From Cyanophora paradoxa CCMP329 (Eukaryota > Plantae > Glaucophyta): a DNA stretch of 64,000 nucleotides. Numbering within the stretch: position 1 is the first letter of the stretch; every line of letters begins with the position of its first letter. This document shows positions 44,349 through 64,000 of the stretch, in pieces. Under the pieces are notes generated by a model. It saw nothing but the letters and a program-made list of their open reading frames with translations. It was not told where the DNA came from and did no database searches. The position numbers and the translations under genes were made by a program. The DNA lies in assembly GCA_004431415.1 (NCBI GenBank), contig QPMI01000087.1:13253-77252 (forward strand), read 5' to 3'.

Positions 44349-47300
44349 ATGAGCGCCGGGCCGCGTTCATCGGACGCTGCAGCAGTAATGCCGGCAGCCG
44401 TCGTCTACACTGCTGCAGGAGTCTCGCAGCGAGCGCAGGACGACGACCGCTCGCCCTTTCTCGCGAGCATGCGCATGGCCAATATCGATCTGGGCCAGGC
44501 CATGGGCAATATCGAGAGCTTCTTCTTGACGTCAACATCTGTGCGGGTTCCGGGCCGCTCTGCGGAGCCGGAGGCCTCTGACGAGGAGCCGGACGATGGA
44601 GATGATGACGACGGAGACCGGCAAGACGGCGCAGACGAAACGGACAAGCATCGACAGCTGCACAAGGCGGCCGAGGACGGGAACCTTGATCTTGTGAAGT
44701 GAGCCGATTAAATGTTCGATGAACGCTAGCTATAGCTCTTCGATCTAATTTATGATCGTTTTGAATTCGCGATGGACCAATTTGACCTTTTCGCCTGTGC
44801 TCGTGCAGAACTATCCTGGATGAAGCAAGCGTACGCAAATCTCAAGATAATACCCCGATGGATCAAGTTTATGCGAAGGATCCTCTGCCTGGGGGCCGAG
44901 ACAGCGAGTGGACCGCGCTTCACTACGCAGCCTCGGGGGGTCATGCGCCAATCATCGAGTGCGCATGCATGCGCATACGCATATGCATGTCGGTCTTAAG
45001 CCTCGTAATGGGTCTAATCATGGTCCGGCCTGGACCGCGGGTTCTGCAGGGTGTTGCTGGGTCACGGTGCTGATGTGGATAAGAAGAATGCGGATGGTCA
45101 AACAGCTCTACATTTGGCAGCGCGGGGGGCTGGAGCGGCTCAGGATAAAATGGCGCTCAGGTGCATTTGCATTCGTATCTAGACGTTCTCTAGCTATAGT
45201 CCACCTCGATATCGATGCCTTGCAGCAACGTTAAAACGTTAACGGTAACACACAAATATCTATGTTTCTCGAATTCTCAGGCTTTTGATCGAGACATACG
45301 ACGCAAGCGGCGATGATAACCAAGTGAAGAATATCGTCAAAGACGAGAGCCGGTGGGCCGGTGGGAAGCATGTCAAACTCCTCCGGTCTCCACTCCGGAT
45401 CCCTCCTGCGCGCTTTGCCGCGTGTGACCTCCAAACAGAATGCTTATTCTCAACGGGGCCTATGTCCGCTCACTGGATAAGTTGAAATTGCCTCCAGTAG
45501 CTCATGCTATTGAGAATTTCCAGTGGAGCAATCTTGATGCGATCCTGAAAGAAGATGATATCAAAATCTCCCTTGAATTTTCCTTTCCTGTCTGCCAGTC
45601 AGCGACCAAGATGGCAACTACCCAAGACGTGGATCTTGGTGCTGTGGTGGATTACTTCGCATACGGAAAACCGCTTGTCTCGATGCTCTTGGTAAAGATT
45701 TTCAAGGTAAATGCAACAATATTTTCATTGAAGAGCGTGTGCTATCGCCCGCGCTTTCGCACGGCCTCGAGAGCAAAACCCGTTCTCAGGACGCCGCTGC
45801 AACGGACTCTACGCACGCTTCAATTCTGCTGGAACGCAAGCAAGACGCAGAAGACCTTACAATCCAACTGTTGGACGCGTTGGAGGCCAAATGGAGCGTG
45901 CTGTTAGACCCCCCAGTCACCGGTTCAAAGAAGCTTGGCCGCGCTGCAAAAAAGCATCGCAGGAGCGCCATCGACAACTGCATCCAGGTGAACTTTTATC
46001 CTGAAGTGGGGGCACACTCATCTATTGTAATCTTGCCATTCTTGCAGACATTGGATTACGAAGTATCTTTAGTGGGCTTGAAAGACCGTACCAGTTTTCT
46101 GGAGCTTGCCGTTGAGCTTGATCAGCAGCAAGTTATGGTAACAATCTGCGCTCGTGATCGCGATCGGCAGTTTCAATCTGCGAGCTCAAAAATATATAAT
46201 GCGGCTGCGTGCAGGCGCATCCTTTTGTCCGTCGTTACATCAACAAACTGTGGAATCCATCAGACAGCTCCTTTTGGAGCAATTTAAATCTATTTTCCGT
46301 TTTTATGCCACGACGCCTGGTCGACAGTCACGGGGTTTCTAATCAATACGCAAAGGTCTGATCTTGGAAGAAAGCTGTTTTATAAATAATAGCCACAGCC
46401 GATCTGATGCGCTACAATTGCTCTGCGCAGGAGGTTGTTTGCTACTTAATTTTTCTTGCACTCTACGCAGCTGGTAAAATGCCTTGACTTTATGCATATA
46501 ACTTCTTGTTTCCGAATTCGAATTGAAGCTGAAATTATATATGTACCTCATACATTTATACCAGCTATGATCGTCGGTCTGGAGGCTGGACGGTCTACAG
46601 ATGCGATTCTGTGGTGCTTGCTTATTCACGACGTCGCCATGCTTATCTACGAAATGCAACAGGTCAAAATTCGAATGCGCGCGTGCAATCTGCCAATGGC
46701 TACTCCTTCTGACACCAATACATTCATCCCCATTTCTCAGATTATGAACTTCAAGTGGCACGAGTATTTCAGCGACGTGTTCAATCTACTTGACTTTCTC
46801 CTTTACATAATATCCTTTTTTATTGCAATTTTACTCCGCGGTTTATGGATATCTTTCTTCTTTGACATACTCGATGGTTACGCTGTTCTTGTGTTATCAA
46901 TTCTTTGCCTTCTCCGGAAGGGAACTGCTCTCGCGATCTTGTCGATTCGTAAGCAATTTCAAAAATTATTGTCACGCACTCGCTCAAATCTTTGTGTCTT
47001 CTATTTGCCATTGATCCCCTGCTGTCGCAATTGATGCGATACCGGTGATTTCCAGTCTTTGCTCCAGCCTGTCTTCGCTTCCTCGAATTCGCGTCCATCC
47101 AGGAAGACCTGGGGCCCATTCTCATTGTGCTCGGCAAGGCGCGCTCTCGTAATCCGAATCTGGAGCTTCCCTCGGCTATGCTTATTTAAATTCGGAGCCA
47201 GATGTTTAAGAATGTGGGCTCGATTGCCATCATAATTGCCCTGGTGCTAGCAAGTTTCTGTGTTTCGATGGTCGGCTGGTCCAGCGCAATCGGCTCGGAG

Positions 47301-48706
47301 CTCGACCCGAAAGACCTGAGTTTCCTGGAGACAGCGTGCGCGCATATGCAGCTTATGTTCTAATCTAGATCTCTGAATAGGTGGCGCTCACACATGTAAT
47401 CTTGCTCAGAGAGATTCTCTACCTAGCAGTCATTGGAGAAACGGATTATGAGGCTTTCGCAACTCGAGTCCCTTACATCGGTGAGAATTTGTTGTCGTGC
47501 GCATGCTGCGGACCAGCTTGCAATAGCAAACTTTAACAAACAAAACCTTTCACGTGTGCCTGGAGCAGGGAAGTACGCTTTGTCCGTCTTCCAGATCTTC
47601 ACCGTGGTGATCATGCTTAATGTACTTACGGGTCTTTTTAGGTACGATGGATGGAATCGGCATATAGCTGTAGCTGCGCGATGGCTATTAGCTAGCGCTG
47701 ACTGATCGCGATCGTACGACACAGCTTTTCGTTCACATCGGTGTTCGAAAAATCTCGTCTTACAAACGCTTTTGGAGTTTCCAAGGTTCGATTTCGCGTT
47801 GGAGCGATGCCTGAATAATAAGTACTTTATTTAATAATAAGTACTTTTGTCTGCAGCTCATTCTACGGTACCACCGGGAGATCTCGGATGAGGACCTGCA
47901 GGTTGCACCTCCGCTGAATCTCCTTTATTTCTGCTGCATCACTCGGTGCTTCTACTACCCCGTTGCGTTCTTTGTGGGGTGCGCCTGGGCGATCTTCTTC
48001 GTGCCTTTCGCCATCCTTGGAGGCATCTTTGCGTGCTTCGGCAACTGCATGGGGTCGTGCACCGCCGGCGAGTTGTACACGCGGAAGGCGTTCGTGCTTC
48101 CGAGTTATAGGGGCCACAAGAACGAGGCCTCGATGTGGACGAAGGCGATCGAGGATTGGCGCAAGGATCGGAAAACGGACTTCTCGCTGGGCACATTTAA
48201 GTACACGTACGACGACTCCGCCGAGGCCGACACATCCAAGAAGACACTCGCATGCTTCCAACCTGACGAGATTGTGGCTTCCAAGCTGCCATCCCGCATA
48301 ACTTCCGAGAATCTTCCGAAAAACGTCGAAAAACTTCAAAGAGATGTCGCGCGCGTACGTAGACACTCTTATTATTCGCAAGAACTGTACCACGCGTACG
48401 TGTATATATTAAATATAAAATCGACCACTGCATTCGCAGATTCAAGACAGATTGAAGTCGATGCAAATTGCATCTTTCGATCTGCAAGGAAAGGTAAGCG
48501 TTTGCTTGAAATCTGCTTGCAGGCTGCGCGCGCGTTCAAGCTTTTCATCGACCGCGGGCCCGGGGTGCACGTGCCCCTCGCAGATGGGGGTGCAGCTCGC
48601 GGCCATTGCTGCCGCCGTTGGCGTGAAGGAGGAGCCGGCATTGCACGCTGCGCGCGCGCGCGCTGAAGCGGGGCTCATGGCCGCTTTCGCGCGGCGCTTT
48701 AAGTAG
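44349..48706 (+). CDS. Ankyrin-repeat TRP (transient receptor potential) cation channel
   Basis: Ankyrin motifs LHKAAEDGNLDLVK, WTALHYAASGGHAPIIE|VLLGHGADVDKKNADGQTALHLAA. Pre-S1 AHPFVRRYINKLW. YFSDVFNLLDF (S3), LRFLEFASIQEDLGPILIVLGK|MF (S4-S5), VVIMLNVLTGLF (S6). TRP-box-like WSFQ followed by PPLNLL. Stop at 48706. Start and some TM exons are approximate. Confidence 0.88.
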
Positions 48707-49917
48707 CCATAGCGCTAGCTGCTGCCGGCCCCTTCTCGTGACCCGAAGCCCCTCGAGCTCCTTTTTCGTATTTTATAATGCGAACGCTCATTGCGTCACC
48801 CCCGTGGCTCAGCGGCTGACGTCAGATAGTTGACCTCACGCGAACTGTGCTCATGCGCATGGCGGGTATCCGGAGCTTGAGGGGCGGCCCGGCCCGGCGG
48901 GGGAGGAACAGATCTTTGGAGGCGGAGGGCGTGGCGGGCCGGGGACAAAATTTCTCGATCGGGCCATCGATATCGTGCAAATGGGAGGGGCCGGGGAGGA
49001 ACGTGTACGGAGGGGTGCGGGATCACGCGCGGGGATCGAGCTCGATTACCTAGTGGCCCGGCCGCGATTTTAGCGCCGGGGGTGCAAGGGGGGAACCGGG
49101 ATCCAATGTCCAATGTCCGGGATTTTAGCGCCGGGGGTGCAAGGGGGGGTGCAAAGAGTCCTAGTGGCACGCACATGCGCAGAGTCCTCCCCTCGGGGTC
49201 GCGCGCGAAGCGCTCGACCCCTCGGCTCGGTCACGCGTGCTCGGCTGCGGGCAGCGGCACAGCTAGGCAGCGGCGCAAGCGGTTTTGCGGTGCAAGCTCA
49301 AGCACGAGTGCCGGGCAGCGTGCTCGGCTGCACTCGGCTGCACATGCGGGCAGCGGCGCGTGCTCGGTAGGCGGTGCCACGGTGCTGCGGTGCAAGCTTG
49401 ATGCAGTGGAAAGTAGTCCAGGCGGCACGGGTACCGTGCGGCGTACGCGGCGCAGTGCGAGGAAGCGGAAATCTAGAGGAGACAGCTAGGGAGAAGTGGT
49501 TCCATGCGCATGCAGAACCGCGCAAGGAAGAGCCCGGAGTGAGAGAGAAGTTGGTTTTCCCCTCGAAAACCACTTTTCGCGAGTTCGAGAGAGCTCTCGC
49601 GAGCTCGACTTTGACGCTCGCGATCGAAAGTCGAAGGCTTAATTTAACGCGCGGCAGGCGTCAAGGGCCTCAAGGCGAGAGAAAACTGGTCTTCGCCCTC
49701 GAAAACCGCTTTTTGCATGGACGGCCGCAGCGACAAACACGTGGCGCAACCCAATTTCCACTCATGTTTTTCCCGTGTTGCATACTGGCCCTCGGAAACG
49801 GCCTCGTAGAAAAATTTTGGCTGAAGCGAGGGAACGGGAAGCAAGCTGGGAGAAGCCCTTCGGTCTTCGTCCCCCCTTGCAATTACGTCCATAATATTAA
49901 TAAGATCAAGTCGGGGA

Positions 49918-52900
49918 TCACGGGCGCGGCCGGCCGCGACTAATCGACATGTCGTAGAGCCACTGGACCTCGGCGGCGGCCGCCCCGCCTCTGCCTTCGC
50001 CGCCCTGCGTCGCGTCCCGCACCAGCAGCGCCACCTGCGGCACATGTACAGCTGAGGCGGGCCGCGGAGGAGGCTCGGGATCGATCGACATCGGCATCGG
50101 CGCCGCACCTCGCCGTCGAGGGCGTTGAGGACGGCCTCGAGGGCGCCGGAGAGCTCGGCGGCCGCGCCGGCCTCCAGCGCCTGCTTGCGCGCGATCGCGA
50201 GCAGCGGCCGGCGCAGCGCCGCCGCCGGGTGCATCAGCAGCGCCCGGCCCGTCAGCGACAGCTGCCTCAGGCACTCCAGCCTGCGAACGACGTCCGGAGT
50301 ACGCGTGTGAGGCCAGCTAAGAATGCGCATGGCTGGAAGAAGAGCAGTGCGGAGGGCGGACTCGAGCTTTGCGTCGGGGTCCGAGAGGAGGCACTTCTCG
50401 TGTAGCCAGTCGAGGGCGACGGCCTCGGGCCAGTCCAGCACCGTCGTCGGGTCCCGCCAGTCCGGCGTTGCCGCGCTCGCCGCCGCGGCGTCAGCATCGG
50501 AGTCGGCATCGGAGCCAGCGTCGGCGACGGCGACGACGCTGGCAGGGATGACCGGGGCGGCGATCGCGAGATCGATATCCAGACGCTGCGCGATGGCAGC
50601 TGCGAGCTCGAGGGCGGCCGCGAGAGGCTGCAGCTGGCCATGGGAGGCGGCGGCTGCAGGGGCGGCCGCGACCGCGAGAGGCTGGGCGGGGGCAGACGAA
50701 GGGGCGGCGCCGGCCGGGGACGGATCGGCGGCCTCGCAGGGCTCCACGGCCGACTCATGGGTTCCGCTGCCAGCACCGGCTCCGCTCGGCGGCCCTGCAT
50801 CCTCTGAAGGCGAGGGTTGGGCGACTGCATCGCCTGCGATGATCGAGAGGGAATGAGTAATGTTAATTAATTGAATGCGGGCATGCGCAAGGCCGGCTTT
50901 GCTCGCAAGACGAGGGGCGCGCCACCGCTGCCGGGGTCGTCGTCTGCATCGAGATCGATGACCTCGACGACCCCGACGGAGCTGCCCGGAGACTGCGGCT
51001 GGCTCCGCGCCCCGCCTCCCCCGTTGTCGTCGTGCAGGGCGGTGGGCGCCGCGGCCGCGCCCGCGCCCGGCTGGCTGCCGGCGGCCGGCGACGGTCGCGG
51101 GGGTTTTGCCGCTGCGAGGAAGGCGCGTCAGCAGCGCTGGCGGAGAAGGAATGCGGCACGCGTGCCCACCGGCGCCAGAAGTAGAGCCTTGTCCGACGAC
51201 ACGCGCAGATCCGACTCCAGGGGCGACGGCGGCTGCTGGGGACGCTGCGAGAGGGCGATGCGATCGCGAGAAATCAGATGCATTTGGATTAGCGGAGCGC
51301 CACGGGTTGGCGGGCGGCGCGAACCGCGGTCGAAGTCGGCGATCGCGACGGCCGCGTGCGCGGGCGTGCGAGAGCTCGTCGAACCCGAAGAAGAAGCCAG
51401 AGCTCGCCAGAGCTGGCCCGGACGCCCGATCCCTTCCTCTTCGCCGCCGCCGCCGGTGTCGTTGGCGCTGCCGCGCGGCCGCTTCGCCCCCGGCTCCCGC
51501 TCCGCCAGCCGCGCGGCCGACAGCGACGCCGATGCCGCCCGCGGCTGCGCGGCCGGCGGTGCGGGCGCGGACGGCAGCTCCGCGTCGACGACCTCTGGCT
51601 CCCGTTGGAAGGCTGAGGCCGGCGCGTCCGGCCCCGTGCTTTGAGTGGCTCGAGCTCGGGGCGAGCCTGCCAGGAAGGGAGGTTAGCAGGAGGACACAAA
51701 CGAGGGCGGGGGGCAAGGGGGTGAAAGGGAGGGCGAGGGGGGCGGAGCTAGCAAGCAGCGCTCACCGGCCGCGGGGTGCCGAGTAGGCGTGGGCCCGGGA
51801 CCAGCGCTGCCTGCGAGGCCGGTGCCGGTGGAGGCGTGCTCCTGACCCCCTTGCGACGCGCGCGCTGAGCCTATGGTCGAGCATTAGCAACGAGAAGGGC
51901 AGGGCGCGACTGAACTCAAGCGGCTGCAGGCGGCGCGCACCGGCGGCGGCGGAAGAGCTGCCACGCAATCGGTCGCTGGCGGGTTCTGGCGGCGCTTGCG
52001 GGATTTCCGAGACGGCCCCAGCCCTCGCCGGCGGCCGATTCCCACCGGCCGCCGACGTGCCGCGTGCATGCCCACCGCTCGCACTGCCTTCGAATTCGCC
52101 ATCGACATCGCGGTCGAGCGCATCCTCTGCCGACGCTTGGCCGTGCTTGCGCTTTCGGGCAGCGTCCGCAGGCGTATACGACGGCAAAGGAACCGTCTCC
52201 TGCACCGCGAAAATGGGGACGGAGAAGAGAGCTCGGGACGAGGGAGGCGAATCGCGCACGGAATAGACGCCCGTTGCATTCACGACGAAAGTGACAGTGC
52301 GCGCCACAGCGCAGGCCATGTCCTGGGACCGCCTGTGGCCACGCCCTCCCGATCAGGCAGCTGCAGTCTGACGGCGGAGAGGGGGGGGGGGGGGGGGGGG
52401 GGGGGGGAGGAAGGGGGGAAGGGGGGGGGGGGGCGGAGCGACGCCTCGCGCACATCGGATCGTTTACCCCGACGGGCGCTCGGCCCTCCTCGGGTCCGCA
52501 GAAAAGCGCCGTGAAAAACGGCTCCCCAATGTACCCTAGAAAAAGAGCGTGGATTCGAACTGGAATCAGGGCATGCTGGACTTCGATGTCGTACCCATCG
52601 GCGGAAATGCGAGAGCGGAGGCCTGTCCACGGGTGCGGCCGAAGTGATCGTAAGATGGGATCACGGGCCCATTAGGGCCGAACCTGATGATTACGACCAC
52701 TTAGAGAGCGTGAACGGGGGCTGGCCGGCCAGGAAGCGGGGCGAGGCGGGCCGCACCACGCGATGAGACAGCGGTCGTGGAAGCGCAGGGCCGCATCGAC
52801 AGAGCAGAGGAGGGGCGAGATGACCTGCCGGCGGCCGCCCCGGTCGTCAGCCGCTCGCTCGGATCGGGAACGGCCACAGCCGCGCGGCACGGCCAGCGGC

Positions 52901-55900
52901 GCGCCTTTCGGCCGTCCAGCATAAAGGCAGCCACGTAGGGGCTCGTAAGGGGGTTGAGGCAGTAGACGCTCTGGAGCAACGCCTGCGGAGGGCGGGCGTC
53001 AGGGCGCGCAGGCGGCGGGGATCCGGGGCTCGGAATGGGCGCTGGTGAAGCCGCGGCGGCGATGGCGGTGGCGACGCGCCTCACGGGCCGTCGCGAGCCT
53101 CCAAGCAAGCTCGACGACCCGCGGGTCGACCTGGATTGGGTATGGCGTCAGGGCGGGCCAGAGGTCGTGCAGCAGAGGGAGGTGGGGCCTGGCGCGGCGC
53201 CGGCGGCCGCCCGGCACGCACCAGGTGGGCGACCAGTTCGCCCCAGTGGCGCGCGAGGAACTCTGCGAAGCCATGAGGGGGCGAGCTCGAGGGGCGCACG
53301 GCGGCACACGAGGCCAGCTGCGCACGCTGGAGCCCAAGCTTTCCATGGCCACTGGCATTGGCGTTGGAGAGGAAGGTGAGGGGATCTGCACGCAGGGAGA
53401 GGGGGGTAGTTAACATGCAGCTAGAGCGTTGTCAAGAGAGTGGAAGGGCAGCGGAAGAGCGCGGCCGACCAAATGCATCGATGTCGCTGTCACTAGCTCC
53501 AGCTGCCGTACCGGCGGCAACGCCGTGCTTGTGGGCTGCCGTGTTCGGCTGCCGAAGCGAATGGGGCGGCGGGGAGGGGGCCGCCTCATAGGCATCGTAG
53601 CCTGGCGGCGGCCAAAGCGAATGGGGTGGCGGGTTGGGGGGCGCGCGGTGGGCTGGCCATGGCGTCGGCTGTGGGGCTGGCGGGCATGGGGCCGACGCCG
53701 CCTGAGGGGCCGGCGCCGGACTGCCGCCCGAAGGCGCGGAAGATGCCGTCGGCTTCTGGCTCTTCCCGACAGGCGCAGATTCTGCAAACAAAAACGAGCC
53801 GGGTCGCAAAAGAAACGTGGCGGGCCGCAAAAATGCAAGAGGGAAAAGGTCGATGCGGACCGGTGGCTGGAGCCTTTCGCTTCTCTGCCGCCCTCTGTAC
53901 GCCCGCCGCTGCGGCTGTGACCGGGCCCCGGATCGTCTTGCTCAGCAGCAGCGCTTGCAGCCCGGGGCACGCCTGCTCATGTAGTCCGGATCCCTTACTA
54001 GTTAGATAGAGAGGAAGCAGCATGCGATTGGGGCGATGCAGAAATTAGAGAGCACCTTCAGGACCCCTGTCTGGCTTACAAGATAGCTGACTGTCCGCGC
54101 CACAGCCTCCGCCGTATCCGTTTGCTTCCTGCAAGTTAAGAGGCTCAGCGGCTCGTTTCTCGTTTCCAGCCCAACTGATCATGATCGAAATAAGCTCATC
54201 ACCTTGCGAGTGATTCACCGTGTCCGATGCGGGAGCCGGGAAGGGCGAGCTTCATCCCAATGCCGGGAAGCGTGCTGATGAAGCGCATGTAGTCTGCGGT
54301 ACAGGTTGTGGAAATCGTGATCACGAACGCCCACGCTCAGGGATCCGGACAGCGCGCATGTGCAGGGACAGACCTGCCAGTGGGAAGGCCAGCGTGTCGT
54401 CACGGGCGGCTACAGCTGCAACAGCGGACACCGATGGAGGCGGGACCGGCCATTTCCTGGGCCGAAACGCATCCGGCCCCAGCCTGGCGGCGAAACACAC
54501 ATCAAGGACGCCAGCGAAAAGCGCGCGGGAAGGCTGCACCACGCGATGCAGCAGCGGTCCCGGAAGCGCAGGGCCTCCTCAACAGAGGGAAGCGGGGGAG
54601 AGATCACCTGCCCGCGGCCATCAGCGGGACGTTTAGCAGCAGCCGGGGCTGGCCAGCCCGCATCGCTAGGGCGGGGCACCTTGACTCCCTCCAGCAGAAA
54701 AGCGGCAACGTAGAAATTTTCTGAGGTCTCACGGCCCGGCAGGATTCGATAGACGAACCATATCGTGCGCTGGATGAAAATAAGGGATTAAAAAGGTTCG
54801 GGGGGCGGGGCGGGGAGAGAACGCGCGCCTCCCGTGACAAGATTAACGACCACGTTTTATCGATTAGCTGAGAGTCAAGCTGATGGGACAAAGGGAGCGT
54901 GAGTTGTACATAGCGGAGGCTTTGAGGGAAGAAAGTCGACCCGCACCGGTAGTGTCACCAGCTGCCGCCAGTGAGTTGCGAGGAACCCTACGCACGCGCG
55001 ATCGTGAGACGCTTGCAAGAGAAGCGACGAACAGCATACACGCACAAAGAAGCGCGTATTTACACGGCAAGTACATGCCAGGGGAAACCAGTTCCAGCCC
55101 CTCGCCATCTGCCGCCATGGCCATGAAAGAAGGCACCGCCTGAGAAGAGCCCGGAGGAGCCACAGGAGGGGCTGCGGCGGGGGCCGCCGCAGGTGCCACC
55201 GGAGGGGCCGCGGGAGGAGCCGCCTCGAAAGCCGCCTCAGGAGCTGCCAAAGGGGCTGACGGAGGGGCCGCCGGAGGGACCGCCGGAGAGGCCACCGCAG
55301 GGGCCGCAGAAAGGACCCGGGGAGGTGTCGCCAAAGGGGCCGACTCAGAGACCGGCTCAGAGGCCACCGGGGGTACCGCCTCCGCTGCAGGCGCCGCGGG
55401 AGGAGCGGAGAGAGGGTCCGCCGGGGGTAACGCCTCAGGGGTCAACGCAGGGGCCGCCGGAGGGGCCGCCGGAGGGGCCGCCGGAGAGGCCGCCGGAGGG
55501 GCCGCAATGGGTACTGCCTCAGTGGTAGCGTCAGGGGCCGCCGGGGGGACCGCCGAAGGGGCCGCCGGGGGTACCGCCTCAGGGGTAGCCTCAGGGGCCG
55601 CCAGGGGTACAGCCGAAGGGGCCGCCGGGGGTAACGCCTCAGTGGTAGCCTCAGGGGCCGCCGGAGGGGCTGCCGGGGGTACCGCCTCAGGGGTCAACGC
55701 AGGGGCCGCCGGAGAGGCTGCCGGAGGGGCCACCGGGGGTACTGCCTCAGCGGCCGCCGCAGGGGCCGCCGGAGGGTCCGCGGGAGGGGCCGACGGGGGT
55801 ACCGCCTCAGGGGTCAACGCAGGAGCCGCCGGAGGGTCCGCGGGAGGGGGCGCCGGGGGTACCGCCTCAGTGGTAGCCTCAGGGGCAGCCGGGGGTACAG

Positions 55901-58900
55901 CCGAAGGGGCCGCCGGGGGTACCGCCTCAGGGGTAGCCTCAGGGGCCGGCGAGGGTACCGCCGGGGGTACCGCCTCAGGGGTAGCCTCAGGGGCCGCCAG
56001 GGGTACAGCCGAAGGGGCCGCCAGGGGTATCACCTCAGCGGCCGCCAGAGGGGCTGCGGGAGGGGCCGACGGGGGTAACGCCTCAGCGGCCGCCGCAGGG
56101 GCCGCCGGAGGGTCCGAGGGAGGGGCCGCCAGGGGTAACGCCTCAGCGGCCGCCGCAGGGGCCGCCGGACGGTCCGAGGGAGGGGCCGTCGGGGATACCG
56201 CCTCAGCGGCCGCTGCAGGGGCCGCCGGAGGGTCCGCGGGAGGGGCCGTCGGGGATACCGCCTCAGCGGCCGCCGCAGGGGCCGCCGGAGGGTCCGCGGG
56301 AGGAGCCGCTGGGGGTACTGCCTCAGGGGTCAACGCAGGGGCCGCCGGAGGGTCCGCAGGAGGGGCCGTCGGGGATACCGCCTCAGCGGCCGCCGCAGGG
56401 GCCGCCGGAGGGTCCGCGGGAGGAGCCGCTGGGGGTACCCCCTCAGCGGCCGCTGCAGGGGCCGCGGGACGGGCCGCCGGAGGGGTCGACGGGGGAACCG
56501 CATCAGGGGTAACCTCAAGGGTCGCCTCGGGGGCCGCGGAAAGGACCGCCGGAGGGGCCGCCGGGGGTACCGCCTCGGAGACTGCAGCAGGGGCCGAGGA
56601 AAGGACCCCCGGAGGGGCCGCTGGGGTAACCGCCTCAGGGTTCGCAGGGGCCGCAGCAGGGGCCGCCGGAGGGGCCGCCGGGGGTACCGCCTCAGGGGTC
56701 GACGCAAGGGCTGCAGGAGGGGCTGCGGGAGGGGCCGCTGGAAAGACTGCGGGATGGGACGCGGGAGGGGCCGCCGCAGGGGCCGCGGGAGGGGCCACTG
56801 GACGCGCTAAGACCGGCCGATTGGCTGACAGGATGAGGGTTACCGGATGTGCTGGCGCCAGGGCGTCGGCCCTCGGACGGGCTGAAGACCGCCGTCGAGC
56901 AGGCGGAACAGGGGCCTGGCAGGCTGGCCATGACCGCAGGGCAGGCGGAGCAGCAACCGCCTGCGCAGCAGGCGCCAGCGGAGCGGCGACCGCCTGAAGG
57001 GCAGGGGCGGTCGGAGCGGCGACGGCCCAAGGGGCAGGCGCCAGCCGCGAGGCAGGAAGGGCAGGGGCCGCCTGACTGCTTGTCGCTGGTCGCTGGGTAG
57101 GTGGAGCAGGGGCCGCCGCACGGGATGGCAACAGCCGCGAGGCTGGCGTGCCAGGGGCTGGCTGACGAGGTTGCGCAGGAAGCTGGGCTGGCATCGGCTG
57201 TGGGGCTGGCGGGGCGGGGGCCGCCTGATAGGCGTCGTAGCCTGGCGGCGGCCGAAGCGAAGGGGGTGGCGGGGCGGGAGCTGCCTGATAGGCGTCGTAG
57301 CCGGGCAGCTGTCGAAGCGAATGGGGCGGCGGGGCGGGGGCCGTCTGATAGGCGTCGTAGCCTGGCGGCTGCCGAAGCGAATGGGGCGGCGGGGCGGGGA
57401 CCGCCTGATAGGGATCGTGGCCTGGCGGCTGCCGAAGCGAATGGGGCGGCGGGGCGGGGACCGCCTGATAGGCGTCGTAGCCGGGCAGCTGCCGAAGCGA
57501 ATGGGGCGGTGGGGCGGGGGGCGCCTGATAGGCATCGTAGCCTGGCGGCTGCCGAAGCGAATGGGGTGGCGGGGCGGGGGCCGCCTGATAGGGATCGTAG
57601 CCTGGCGGCTGCCGAAGCGAATGGGGTGGCGGGGCGGGGACCGCCTGATAGGGATCGTGGCCTGGCGGCTGCCGAAGCGAATGGGGCGGTGGGGCGGGAG
57701 CTGCCTGATAGGCGTCGTAGCCTGGCGGCGGCCGAAGCGAATGGGGCGGCTGGGCGGGGGCCGCCTGATAAACATCGTAGCCTGGCGGCGGCCGAAGCGA
57801 ATGGGGCGGCGGGGCGGTGGCCGCCTGATAGGCGTCGTAGCCTGGCAGCTGCCGAAGCGAATGGGGCGGCGGGGCGGGGGCCGCCTGATAGGCATCGTAG
57901 CCGGGCAGCTGCCGAAGCGAATGGGGCGGTGGGGCGGGGGCCGCCTGATAGGCATCGTAGCCGGGCAGCTGCCGAAGCGAATGGGGCGGTGGGGCGGGGG
58001 CCGCCTGATAGGCATCGTAGCCTGGCGGCTGCCGAAGCGAATGGGGCGGCGGGGCGTGGGTCGCGCGGTGGGCTGGCCATGGCGGCAGCTGCGGGGGCGG
58101 CAGGGCGGGGGCCGCGGTGGCCGCCGACTGAGAGCCCGGCGCCGGCCTGCCGCCCGAAGGCGCCGAAGATACTGCCGGCTTCGGGCTCTTCCCGACAGGC
58201 GCAGATTCTGCAAACAAAAACGAGCCGGGTCGCAAAAGAAACGTGGCGGGCCGCAAAAATGCAAGAGGGAAAAGGTCGATGCGGACCGGTGGCTGGAGCC
58301 TTTCGCTTCTCTGCCGCCCTCTGTACGCCCGCCGCTGCGGCTGTGACCGGGCCCCGGATCGTCTTGCTCAGCAGCAGCGCTTGCAGCCCGGGGCACGCCT
58401 GCTCATGTCATCCATCAGAATAGAAAGCAGAACGAGGCAGACGGCCGAGACAGAAAGAGAACCTTCGAGGCCCCTGTCTCATCTGCAATGAAAGCAACCA
58501 TCCGCGCCACGGCCCCCACTGTGTCCATTCGCTTCCTGCGCACACGAGAGGCTCGTTTCTCGTTTCCAGCGCTCAGAGCCGGCTCGACTCACTGCGGGTC
58601 GTTGTGTCCGAGGCGGAGGTGCTGCGCCCCATAGCCGCGCAGAAAAAGCAGGCTGTAGAAACGCTCGATTCGGTAGGCTGCGGAGGGAAGAATCACGAGT
58701 GCCCACGTTCGGGCGTCGCGAGGATTCGAACCCGCGAGCGGAAAGGCGAGTGGGTCGTCGCCAGTGACAGTGGGTGCAGGCAGAGAAGGCACATTTCGGC
58801 CTAGCGCAGACAAGGCGCCAGCCGACGGCTTGCTGGCCTCAAACGCCTCCGGCCCAAGCCTGGTGGCGGGAACACTCGTCACGGTCAAGGATCGAACGCC

Positions 58901-59451
58901 AGCGGATTGCGCACAGGGCGGGCCGGGGCGGGTTCGCACCACGCTATCCGACAGCGGTCTCGAAAGCGCAGCGCCTCTTCGATGGAGGGAAGCGGGGGGG
59001 AGATCACCTGCCGGCGGCCGTCCGCGGGCCGTTTAGCAGCAGCCCGGGCTGGCGGGCACGCATCGCTAGGGCGGGGCACCTTGACTCCCTCCAGCAGAAA
59101 CGCGGCGACATAGAATTCTTCTGAGGCCTCGCGGCCCGCCAGAACTCGAAAGACGAAGGCTGTAGCGCGCTGCAAAAATGGGGCGCTCAATCAGAGGCAA
59201 TCGAGGAGGGGGAGGGGGGGGGGGGGGGGAAGGGGAGGGGGAGGGGAGGGGGGGAAGCTCGAGGGAGAGAGCGTGCCTGCTGTGACATGATCGACGCCCA
59301 GACTTTACACGCGAGCTGGTGGTCAAGCTAACGGAGCAAAGGGAATGTGAGGCGGAATTATAATCATGCGATTAACGAGAATATCTCGAAAGAAAGAAAG
59401 CGGCCGGACCGGGGGTGTCACCAGCTGCCGCCAGTGAGTCGCGAGAAAACC
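49918..59451 (-). CDS. Large multi-exon protein: three homologous modules with an AP2-like motif, Pro/Ala and PPxY repeat linkers, C-terminal SAM-like domain (5' end unresolved)
   Basis: Modules at ~58455-59451, ~54055-54990 and ~52255-53260 share exon order and intron positions (FLAxHW..LV | ..W | YVAAF.L.G.K | VISP.L.S.EEALRF.DRC.IAW | ..LAFP | ..AVAR.V). SAM-like PTTVLDWPEAVALDWL...LSLTGRALL at ~50200-50470. Stop at 49918. Confidence 0.6.
55150..56800 (-). repeat. Degenerate coding minisatellite (PPAAPP..PAAP...EAV repeats)
   Basis: Recurrent ggggccgccggagg / gggggtaccgcctcag units within ORF 54864-58256. Confidence 0.85.
57200..58052 (-). repeat. 60-bp coding tandem repeat, ~14 copies, encoding PPPHSLRQ(P/L)PGYDAYQAAPA
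   Basis: Exact 60-nt period visible from line 57241 to 58021. Confidence 0.95.
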
Positions 59452-60398
59452 TGCGCATCGGGATTTGCGCTCTCAATGCGTAAATCGAGTTTTGCGCCGA
59501 CGGAATGCGAACAAAGAAGACCGTAGCCGAGCGCCAGGCACGAAAGAGCTGAGCGACTCGCTAGCCGCGGTAGCTAGCGGCGCGAGGCGAGCACGGGATT
59601 AGCAGCAGGCTGCTGCGAGCGCCCCGCAAGGGACTAGCTGAGCTAGCCGTTGGGCCGAGCCGGCGGGCTTGAAGCCGCCGAGCTCCGAGGGGTACGCTGA
59701 TTCGGGGTTTCCCTTCACGCCCAGCTTCGCTCGCGGCCGCCCCAGGCCACGGAGCGACCAGCGGCGAAGCGAAATCGCCACAGCCAGCACAGCAATCACT
59801 CCTAAACAGCCCTGTCGGACCGGCGGCCGCACATCTCGGCCGTCCCTCCTATTGCACGGAACCGACCCAACTCTGCAGCACCATGGCTAGCTGCAGTGGA
59901 GCGCGATCCCGCGGCAGCAACTGTGAAGCAGTTCTGCCTCGTTGGCTGGCCGGAGCAAACCCTGTTCCCAGCGATCCTCCCGGAATCGGCCCCGGGCCCC
60001 GATTCACGCTTGAATCTGGTGCCTTACTGCCGTGCCGGTACGTGGATTCACGTCCGGGCCCGCCCGCCACGCTCGCATCCAGCGCGCGCTGGCTATCCCG
60101 GGGGCCCACCGTCAGTCCGCGGCCGCCGGCTTGCCTATACACTCTATAAGCGTGTATTGAGACCCGCCGCGCGATTCCTCCGGATCCCTGACCATTCCCT
60201 GCGCGCATGATCCGGGAGCTCCTCGGCGCTCGAACCGGACGCCGCCGCCGCGCCACGCCGGCGGAGCTCGCGCAGGACCGCCCCGGCCTGCTGGCGCTCG
60301 CGCTGCAGGCCCACTGCGCCGTCGGGGCTTGGATCGTGCCTTACGCGTGATCCACCGACGGACGGTGCCCGGCCGCCCGCGCGGCTCGGGGTGGCGAC

Positions 60399-61300
60399 GG
60401 AGTACGGTTCTCGCTGGCGCCTCGCTGCGAGTCGGCCCGCTGGCGCCTCGCTGCGGGCCCCGTGCTCGGAGTTCCGGGGACCGCTGGCGCGGCGCGCCGC
60501 GGTCCCGGCCTGCCCCGCAGGCCCCGGCCGCGCCCGCGGCCGGCGAGCTCCACCCCGGAGTACGGCCTCGCTGGCGGAACCGCTGCGAGATGGCCCGCTG
60601 GCGCGTCGCGCTGCGGGCCCCGTGCTCGGAGTTCCGGGGACCGCTGGCGCGGCGCGCCGCGGTCCCGGCCTGCCCCGCAGGCCCCGGCCGCGCCCGCGGC
60701 CGGCGAGCTCCACCCCGGAGTACGGCCTCGCTGGCGGAACCGCTGCGAGATGGCCCGCTGGCGCGTCGCGCTGCGGGCCCCGTGCTCGGAGTTCCGGGGA
60801 CCGCTGGCGCGGCGCGCCGCGGTCCCGGCCTGCCCGCAGGCCCGGCCGCGCCCGCGGCCGCGAGCTCCACCCGGAGTACGGCCTCGCTGGCGGAACCGCT
60901 GCGAGATGGCCCGCTGGCGAGTCGCGCTGCGGGCCCGTGCTCGGAGTTCGGGGACCGCTGGCGCGGCGCGCCGCGGTCCCGGCCTGCCCGCAGGCCCCGG
61001 CGCGCCCGCGGCCGGCGAGCTCCACCCCGGAGTACGGCCTCGCTGGCGGAACCGCCGCGAGATGGCCCGCTGGCGCGTCGCGCTGCGGGCCCCGTGCTCG
61101 GAGTTCCGGGGACCGCTGGCGCGGCGCGCCGCGGTCCCGGCCTGCCCCGCAGGCCCGGCCGCGCCCGCGGCCGGCGAGCTCCACCCCGGAGTACTAGTAC
61201 GGCCTCGCTGGCGGAACCGCTGCGAGATGGCCCGCTGGCGCTCGCCGCTGCGGGCCCCGTCCTCGGATCTAGTTCCGGGACCGCTGGCGCGTCGCTCTGC
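60399..61300. repeat. GC-rich satellite, ~160-bp unit, ~5.5 copies
   Basis: Unit start ggagtac at about 60399, 60557, 60717, 60873, 61029 and 61188. Confidence 0.95.
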
Positions 61301-62029: not shown

Positions 62030-64000
62030 CGCGCCCTCGCGCGCCCCACGCCGCCGCTCGACCCGCCGCCGCCGCATAACCTGCTTGCGCAGGGCGGGCC
62101 GGCCGCTGGCTCGACCGCGCGCTCTCCGGCGGGAGCCCTGGGCCCACTCCACGGCTCCGCCCCGAGGTCCGAAAGCGACCTCGCGCGGCCCCGCACCGCC
62201 GCTCGACCGCCACCGCCGCCTGACCTGCTTGCGCAGGGCGGCCGGCCGCAGGCTCGCCTGCAGCGCCCTCCGGCTGGAGCCCTTGGGCTCCACTCCGCCC
62301 CGAGGTCCGTAGCGACCTCGCGCGGCCCCGCGGCGCCGCTTACCGCCGCCGCCGCATAACCTGCTTGCGCAGGCAGGCCGGCCGCTGGCTCGCATGCAGC
62401 GCTCCCCGGCTGGAGCCAAGGCTCCACCTCCGCCCGAGGTCTGCAGCGACTCGCGCGGCCCGGCAACGCCGCCCGGCTCGCCGCCTCCGCCTGACCTGCT
62501 GGCGCAGGGCGGGCCGGCGAGGTCCAAAAATCGACCTCGCGCAGCCCCGCATCACCGCTCGACCCGCCGCCGCTGCCTGACCTGCTTGCCAAGGCGGGCC
62601 GGCCGCTGGCTCGCATATAACACTCCCGGGCTGGAGCCCAGGGCCCCACCTCCGCCCCGAGGTCCGTCACGGCCTCGCGCGGCCCCGCGCTGCCGCTCGA
62701 CCCGCCGCCGCCGCATAACCTGCTTGCGCAGGGCGGGCCGGCCGCTGGCTCGACCGCGGCGCCCTCCGGCGGGAGCCCAGGGCTCCACCTCCGCCAGAGG
62801 TCCGTCACGGCCTCGCGCGGCCCCACACTGCCGCTCGACCCGCCGCCGCCGCATAACCTGCTTGCGCAGGGCGGGCCGGCCGCTGGCTCGACCGCGGCGC
62901 CCTCCGGCGGGAGCCCAGGGCTCCACCTCCGCCAGAGGTCCGTCACGGCCTCGCGCGGCCCCACACTGCCGCTCGACCCGCCGCCGCCGCATAACCTGCT
63001 TGCGCAGGGCAGGCCGGCCGCTGGCTCGCATGCAGCGCTCCCCGGCTGGAGCCCAAGGCTCCACCTCCGCCCCGAGGTCTGCAGCGACCTCGCGCGGCCC
63101 GGCAACGCCGCCCGGCTCGCCGCCTCCGCCTGACCTGCTGGCGCAGGGCGGGCCGGCGAGGTCCAAAAATCGACCTCGCGCAGCCCCGCATCACCGCTCG
63201 ACCCGCCGCCGCTGCCTGACCTGCTTGCCAAGGCGGGCCGGCCGCTGGCTCGCATATAACACTCCCGGGCTGGAGCCCAGGGCCCCACCTCCGCCCCGAG
63301 GTCCGTCACGGCCTCGCGCGGCCCCGCGCTGCCGCTCGACCCGCCGCCGCCGCATAACCTGCTTGCGCAGGGCGGGCCGGCCGCTGGCTCGACCGCGGCG
63401 CCCTCCGGCGGGAGCCCAGGGCTCCACCTCCGCCAGAGGTCCGTCACGGCCTCGCGCGGCCCCGCGCTGCCGCTCGACCCGCCGCCGCCGCATAACCTGC
63501 CTGCGCAGGGCCGGCCGCTGGCTCGCATGCAGCGCCCCCCGGCTGGAGCCCAGGCTCCGCCTCCGCCCCGAGGTCCGTCACGGCTTCGCGCGGCCCCGCG
63601 CTGCCGCTCGACCTGCCGCCGCCGCGTAACCTGCTTGCGCAGGGCGGGTTGGCCGCTGGCTCGCATGCAGCGCCCCCGGCCGGAGCCCAGGGATCCACCC
63701 CGCCCCGAGGTCCGTTCACGGCCTCGCGCGGCCCCGCGCTGCCGCTCGACCCGCCGCCACCGCATAACCTGCTTGCGTAGGACGGGCCGGCCGCGGGCTC
63801 GCATACCGCGCTCCCGGCTGGAGTCCAGGGCGCCACCTCCGCCCCGAGGTCCGTCACGGCCTCGCGCGGCCCCGCGCCGCCGCTCGACCGGCCGCCGCGC
63901 ATCACCTGCTCGCGCAGGGCGGGCCGGCCGCTGGCTCGCATGCAGCGCCCCCCGCTGGAGCCCAGGGCGCGCCTCCGCCCCGAGGTCCGTCACGGCCTCG
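62030..64000. repeat. GC-rich satellite, ~137-bp unit with higher-order ~640-bp structure; runs off the window end
   Basis: Recurring gccgcataacctgcttgcgcagggc...gaggtccgtcacggcctcgcgcggcccc. The variant unit containing gtccaaaaatcgacc recurs at ~62522 and ~63161. Confidence 0.95.

Follow-up and report, generated by a model that had tools for sequence, protein, structure and literature searches.

The window analysed here, a stretch of 64,000 nucleotides (nt) from the glaucophyte Cyanophora paradoxa CCMP329 (contig QPMI01000087.1), carries a giant locus that a sequence-only reading had described as an unnamed, regulator-like gene. We consider it probable that a genuine gene lies here, transcribed and spliced from 34 exons or more and no shorter than 2,335 codons, that it belongs to a family of paralogs known to date from C. 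paradoxa alone, and that its product is best explained as a scaffold or regulator. The encoded protein, most of which is low-complexity, contains three copies of a module (M1, M2 and M3) with a predicted AP2-like core, long low-complexity spacers and a conserved C-terminal domain.

The gene model comprises 34 exons, which run on the minus strand from 59450 to a stop codon at 49918-49920 and encode 2,335 codons with no internal stop; all gene features given below are on this strand. Each of the 33 introns is 54-145 nt long and has GT/GC-AG ends. The model was built from RNA joints, M1-to-M2 homology, splice signals, a codon-position score trained on the module exons, and contig-depth arithmetic. 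Since its junctions come from independent sources, the closing of the frame on a stop codon is itself a check of the model, and a further check is that the spliced C-terminus aligns without gaps to the paralogs. The 3' boundary proposed earlier (49918) proved to be the stop codon, and the motif blocks quoted in the sequence-only reading are all present where it had placed them, on the minus strand and in short open stretches. Its claim of one multi-exon gene is supported by the RNA joints together with the frame closing over all 34 exons. The 5' end was traced to 59410-59513, by homology to the RNA-verified M2 junction at 54988-55045, and consists of the tail of an upstream exon ending at 59513, an intron, and M1 exon a (59410-59450). 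No in-frame ATG was found in this upstream exon, and the 5' end of the gene lies beyond 59451. The G+C content of the gene region is 64-79%.

Ten sequencing runs of one organism contain the stretch. Contig sets of three RNA-type runs from two studies (X1, X2 and X8) and of one DNA run (X5) were compared with the repeat-free half of the gene, 49400-55150. At least 14 joints, among those listed, were found in RNA-type contigs, and allowing for ambiguous letters all of them are GT-AG or GC-AG joints on the minus strand. Two further joints were recovered from loose contig ends (54988-55045 and 50834-50922), bringing the introns seen in RNA to 16. None of these joints was present in the X5 contigs over the same interval. 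An X2 contig of 1,115 nt (53470-54769) covers the linker exon together with a portion of M2, and an X1 contig of 614 nt runs on from the linker exon into the first M3 exons. The gene is therefore expressed and spliced. Some X8 contigs match the C-terminal exons at 95% or more and then continue with up to 255 unlike letters (at 50181, 50485, 51054, 51094, 51439 and 51500); these may be paralog transcripts or chimeric contigs.

The three modules share exon lengths and phases, and each encodes ~150-180 amino acids (aa). Exon a (41 nt, phase 1) codes for an F-L-A-x-H-W helix and is followed by exon a2 (51 nt), by exons b (90, 90 and 78 nt in M1, M2 and M3) and c (68 nt), which together encode the AP2-like core, and then by exons d, e and f. 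Exon g (112 nt) occurs in M1 and M2 only, and its two copies are identical at 112 of 112 positions. M2 (53861-54987) has eight exons, 54947-54987, 54829-54879, 54680-54769 (b), 54540-54607 (c), 54374-54483, 54203-54293, 54056-54128 and 53861-53972 (g), and every intron between them was seen as a joint in X1, X2 or X8 and none in X5. The eight exons of M1 (58287-59450) are 59410-59450, 59277-59327, 59080-59169 (b), 58940-59007 (c), 58732-58859, 58593-58677, 58463-58535 and 58287-58398 (g); they were placed by homology to M2, GT/GC-AG ends, the open frame and tblastn hits of the paralogs. M3 (52260-53262) has seven exons, 53222-53262, 53080-53130, 52905-52982 (b), 52757-52824 (c), 52595-52683, 52468-52535 and 52260-52322. 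Its first three introns are RNA-verified; the later ones were placed by splice signals, frame closure and paralog alignment, and contig depth agrees with the exon sizes.

Protein identity is 69.5% between M1 and M2, 38.4% between M1 and M3 and 45.0% between M2 and M3, and the corresponding ratios of nonsynonymous to synonymous substitution rates (dN/dS) are 0.47, 0.38 and 0.31. The resemblance greatly exceeds what chance would give, and these values indicate that the copies are coding and constrained and that M3 is an old copy. The three aligned modules with shared intron positions that had been proposed are thus confirmed, as are the spacers between them, which are rich in Ala as well as Pro. 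At the DNA level M1 and M2 repeat with a 4.4 kb period; counting introns, they are 84% identical along 237 nt and 96% along 292 nt, and their resemblance is partly the result of recent internal duplication or gene conversion. Exon g with the introns on either side of it (53696-53987 and 58122-58413) reaches 96-100% identity, as against 60-88% for the remaining module parts, a pattern that suggests a recent gene conversion within the gene.

Some introns of the modules have features of their own. The 72-nt introns between exons b and c (54608-54679 and 59008-59079) are in frame and free of stops, and their M1-M2 identity is 88.9% compared to 81-82% in the flanking exons. The M2 copy is fully spliced in X1. 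Paralogs P0002 and P0004, as annotated, have short in-frame insertions at the same junction, which corresponds to the beta2-beta3 hairpin, and alternative splicing or retention of this intron could change the hairpin. Two introns each contain a run of ~50 G when read on the plus strand, which is poly-C in the pre-mRNA: 52381-52433 (M3 e-f) and 59208-59254 (M1 a2-b).

Sequence searches for relatives used the window exons and in-frame read-through pieces (exon b, intron and exon c; a C-terminal piece with a 27-aa intron). When 1.84 billion representative proteins were searched exhaustively with HMMER, the profile of exon b, intron and exon c returned six proteins, five of which were Cyanophora paradoxa proteins from EukProt. 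The sixth, the bacterial repeat protein P0006, was discounted, its match to the helix motif being due to chance. A word search with alignment A4 added one further Cyanophora fragment, P0009; word searches with P0003 and with the 5' part of the 3,162-nt exon returned only P0003 itself and nothing, respectively. The C. paradoxa paralogs (EukProt EP00741) are tig00000430_g623, tig00020999_g16974, tig00000093_g3628, tig00000520_g1810, tig00021357_g20788 and tig00000430_g611. They combine a module of the kind found in the window, which we call type A, with a shorter, basic type B module bearing a W-R-G motif. A hidden Markov model (HMM) of the three spliced window modules matches paralog type A modules end to end (E 1e-26 to 7e-41) and type B weakly; its positions 1-171 are covered in P0001, P0002 and P0003 (E 1e-32 to 7e-41). 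The N-terminal F-x-x-x-R/H-W helix, the core and the A-V-A-R helix all align to the paralog modules by HMM, alignment A4 and tblastn. The relatives detected among the 1.84 billion proteins searched are all from C. paradoxa, and the gene is a member of this family rather than a one-off.

In paralogs P0001-P0005, type B can be aligned with type A over a stretch that starts at the second strand, takes in the helix and ends at the subsequent Y-x-G-E/D motif, and of the two types it appears the more similar to canonical AP2. In the window tblastn detected no type B module, and tblastn of a type B module against phage genomes for HNH-AP2 relatives gave only chance matches (E 8).

To assign a fold, we used the paralog module P0003:318-480, to which the window exons align as fragments in A4. 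Its AlphaFold2 model has a mean predicted local distance difference test score (pLDDT) of 92.3 and a predicted template modelling score of 0.89, and contains helices at residues 3-17 and 24-39, strands at 43-45, 48-52, 55-62 and 65-68, a helix at 75-90 and further helices to residue 154. It thus includes the arrangement that characterises AP2/ERF domains, an antiparallel sheet of three strands with a C-terminal helix packed on it, ~60 aa in all. AP2 domains were the best structural matches of this model in three libraries (Foldseek against PDB, an exhaustive VIA-align search and the ESM Atlas). Foldseek placed the AP2 domain of TEM1 and WRINKLED1 first and AtERF1 at rank 19, with a root-mean-square deviation of 3.1 over 57 columns, at E-values of only 0.13-1.3. 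The ESM Atlas shape search gave six rows, four labelled PF00847 or AP2/ERF and two annotated so by name only, with template modelling scores of 0.35-0.49 over 69-100 aligned residues. The comparison by AlphaFold and Foldseek proposed in the sequence-only reading, run here on the paralog module, therefore has AP2 domains at the top. On this model the module core has an AP2 fold, a claim about the predicted fold that stands apart from membership of PF00847 and from homology. The idea of a divergent AP2-like unit, embedded in a larger unassignable domain and repeated three times, agrees with the fold of the paralog model and with the lack of any match in the family libraries; no AP2 match was obtained by sequence. 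Searches of Pfam, PDB sequences and ESM Atlas features with exons or read-through pieces returned no usable match.

The gene ends in a conserved family domain, encoded from ~50480 down to ~49960. The spliced tail aligns gap-free to the C-termini of P0002, P0005 and P0008 (tblastn E 4e-12 for P0002). It has no match in Pfam or among PDB sequences. Its AlphaFold2 model consists of long helices at a pLDDT of 63.9 (49-66 in the part relevant to a SAM domain), and the 50 best structural matches of this low-confidence model contain only generic helical proteins and no SAM domain. The SAM-like C-terminus proposed earlier therefore finds no support by sequence or in this weak model, which does not decide against it either, and the tail is a family-specific helical domain. 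A homodimer prediction with two copies of the first row of alignment A5 scored 0.00, which gives no verdict and is evidence neither way.

Between M1 and M2 lies a single low-complexity exon of 3,162 nt (55046-58207), defined by the only minus-strand frame open throughout; an RNA contig (loose end 54987) connects its 3' end to M2 exon a. Repeat analysis identified two arrays here. The (L/P)PxY array (57201-58064) consists of a 60-nt (20-aa) unit repeated 14.4 times at 91% identity and holds 12 PPxY/LPxY motifs, so that the array reported in the sequence-only reading is real; the second array (55151-56796) is Ala/Pro-rich with 12-nt and 60/120-nt periods. The whole model contains 14 (L/P)PxY motifs, 12 of them at 20-residue spacing, and 558 Ala and 441 Pro among its 2,335 residues (43% Ala plus Pro). 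Basic KRK clusters follow M1 and M2, and an RKRK cluster follows M3. Linker exons at 53470-53781 (Pro-rich, with one PPGY) and 53326-53385, spanning 53326-53781, join M2 to M3 and were placed by RNA joints. After M3, further low-complexity exons occupy 50923-52199 (51941-52199, 51766-51870, 51325-51666, 51170-51244 and 50923-51111), placed by RNA contigs (introns 51871-51940 and 50834-50922), depth arithmetic and frame scores. The first of these carries the RKRK cluster, the 75-nt exon 51170-51244 was fixed by contig-depth arithmetic, and exon 50923-51111 codes for a hydrophobic stretch followed by acidic residues. The last three exons, 50362-50833, 50109-50280 and 49918-50034 (49918-50833), are separated by the RNA-verified intron 50281-50361 and by intron 50035-50108, which was placed from a contig end and the frame.

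Several points weigh against reading the locus as one gene for an AP2-fold scaffold or regulator. The fold is predicted for a paralog module, not for the window's own spliced modules. The PF00847 profile has no match at E<=10 in the window exons, the read-through pieces or the paralog type A and type B sub-ranges, and none at E<=1 in the full-length paralogs; profile A4 finds no AP2 match among PDB sequences. The exon b plus c cores of M1-M3 have a net charge of +1 and an isoelectric point (pI) of 8.0-8.2, and their strands, with positions matched by eye, are mostly aromatic, aliphatic and acidic, whereas in the paralogs the basic type B cores carry +4 to +8 and retain the WRG motif. The RNA joints lie within 49400-55150, downstream of M1, and the one full-length mRNA is a putative composite of contigs, homology and splice signals.

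The charge of the cores bears directly on DNA binding. AP2/ERF domains, as in the AtERF1-GCC box complex (1GCC), contact the DNA major groove via Arg and Trp of the sheet. The window modules lack such basic, Arg/Trp-rich strands, and from their residues the canonical contact through the sheet looks lost in type A. The DNA-binding unit proposed earlier is hence upheld in its AP2-like predicted fold and not in its near-neutral sheet. Given the core charge of +1 and the strand composition, DNA binding by the giant protein is left as an open inference, one that we hold to be possible and somewhat doubtful. On one alternative, the AP2 fold of the type A modules has degenerated and lost DNA binding, and the modules instead serve as protein-protein or ligand-binding units in a disordered adaptor. 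The near-neutral cores with hydrophobic and acidic strands, set against the basic type B of the paralogs, would fit this, as would the location of the best-conserved residues in the helix and tail rather than the sheet. However, basic KRK and RKRK clusters follow the modules, whole modules have a pI of 7.1-9.5, and type A is combined with basic type B in the paralogs. We regard this alternative as a serious one, if on the unlikely side.

A second alternative divides the locus into at least two genes or transcripts, such as M1 with the repeat exon and, separately, M2, M3 and the tail, with the giant open reading frame (ORF) an artefact of open frames in GC-rich repeats. Such repeats do yield long ORFs in several frames, there are in-frame ATGs near the 3' end of the 3,162-nt exon, and the RNA contig comparison covered 49400-55150. 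Yet the 3' end of this exon is spliced to M2 in RNA, and the sole minus-strand frame open through its 3.16 kb is also the frame connecting exon g of M1 with exon a of M2. Moreover, the loose end of an X2 contig matches 57996-58025, inside the exon. A split locus thus appears improbable. That the gene is mobile-element cargo, a mobile-element remnant or a decaying duplicate rather than a host regulator is very improbable, since, although the family is lineage-specific and expanded and tandem satellite arrays lie directly upstream, there is no transposase, nuclease or reverse-transcriptase match in Pfam for exons, read-through pieces or paralogs, and the frame of the gene is intact across 33 short spliced introns, with dN/dS <0.5.

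The large upstream satellite arrays, at 60398-61295 and 62031-64000, include a 160-nt unit repeated 5.6 times at 94% identity and others of 136-138-nt units that continue to the end of the window. Downstream of the 3' end of the gene is an AT-rich island (46000-47500; 43-46% G+C with strong AT skew), compared to 60-79% G+C in the rest of the window.

Returning to the single giant gene, we propose that its product may act in the nucleus as a multivalent scaffold or regulator. Repeated weak binding to nucleic acid, chromatin or a partner protein would come from the AP2-fold modules, WW-domain proteins would dock on the PPxY array, and the C-terminal domain may link family members. For the giant protein itself, we infer the nuclear location, DNA binding, WW recruitment and self-association. 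A more specific and rather unlikely version is that the family represents a glaucophyte branch of the AP2 superfamily that is invisible to profile searches. Here the type A sheet would be without its DNA-contact residues and would have gained helical extensions, and three modules on a disordered PPxY scaffold would form a multivalent hub for chromatin or proteins, possibly condensate-forming, rather than a classic transcription factor.

AP2/ERF ranks among the major plant DNA-binding domains, and little is known of its early evolution in Archaeplastida. In the glaucophyte family described here the AP2 fold is a predicted one, visible in structure prediction alone; it has additional helices and comes in a basic and a neutral sub-type. 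This suggests that profile-based catalogues of algal transcription factors miss the whole expansion. Type A and type B also form a natural pair for learning which features of the fold DNA binding needs. In a limited full-text search of the literature, we found no paper on such a family, nor on the combination of three modules, a PPxY array and a family-specific tail.

The locus adds a new and exceptionally large member to a family that, on the prediction for the paralog module, varies the AP2 fold in a new way. The paralogs are 79-900 aa long with mixed type A and type B modules, whereas this gene encodes at least 2,335 aa with three type A modules. The PPxY array and the 43% Ala/Pro content were recorded in this gene; the paralogs were compared for modules and tail. 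Compared to SAM domains (PF00536/PF07647), the tail is likewise helical and C-terminal, with a Trp in the first helix and a later L-T-G-R-x-L-L at SAM-like spacing, but it is without a Pfam or PDB sequence match and its model has long helices. With AP2/ERF domains (PF00847; 1GCC/2GCC AtERF1, 7ET4 TEM1 and 7WQ5 WRINKLED1) the module shares, in prediction, a small antiparallel sheet packed on one helix. It also shares an S/T-x-E-E-A helix motif followed by D-R and later L-(N/A)-F-P, with a structure-based identity of 23-25%. It differs in having no HMM-level similarity, no Arg/Trp-rich strands and a core near neutral. In addition, the module core is set between an N-terminal helical hairpin and a ~70-aa helical tail, is split over at least three exons and occurs three times in a low-complexity protein of 2,335 aa.

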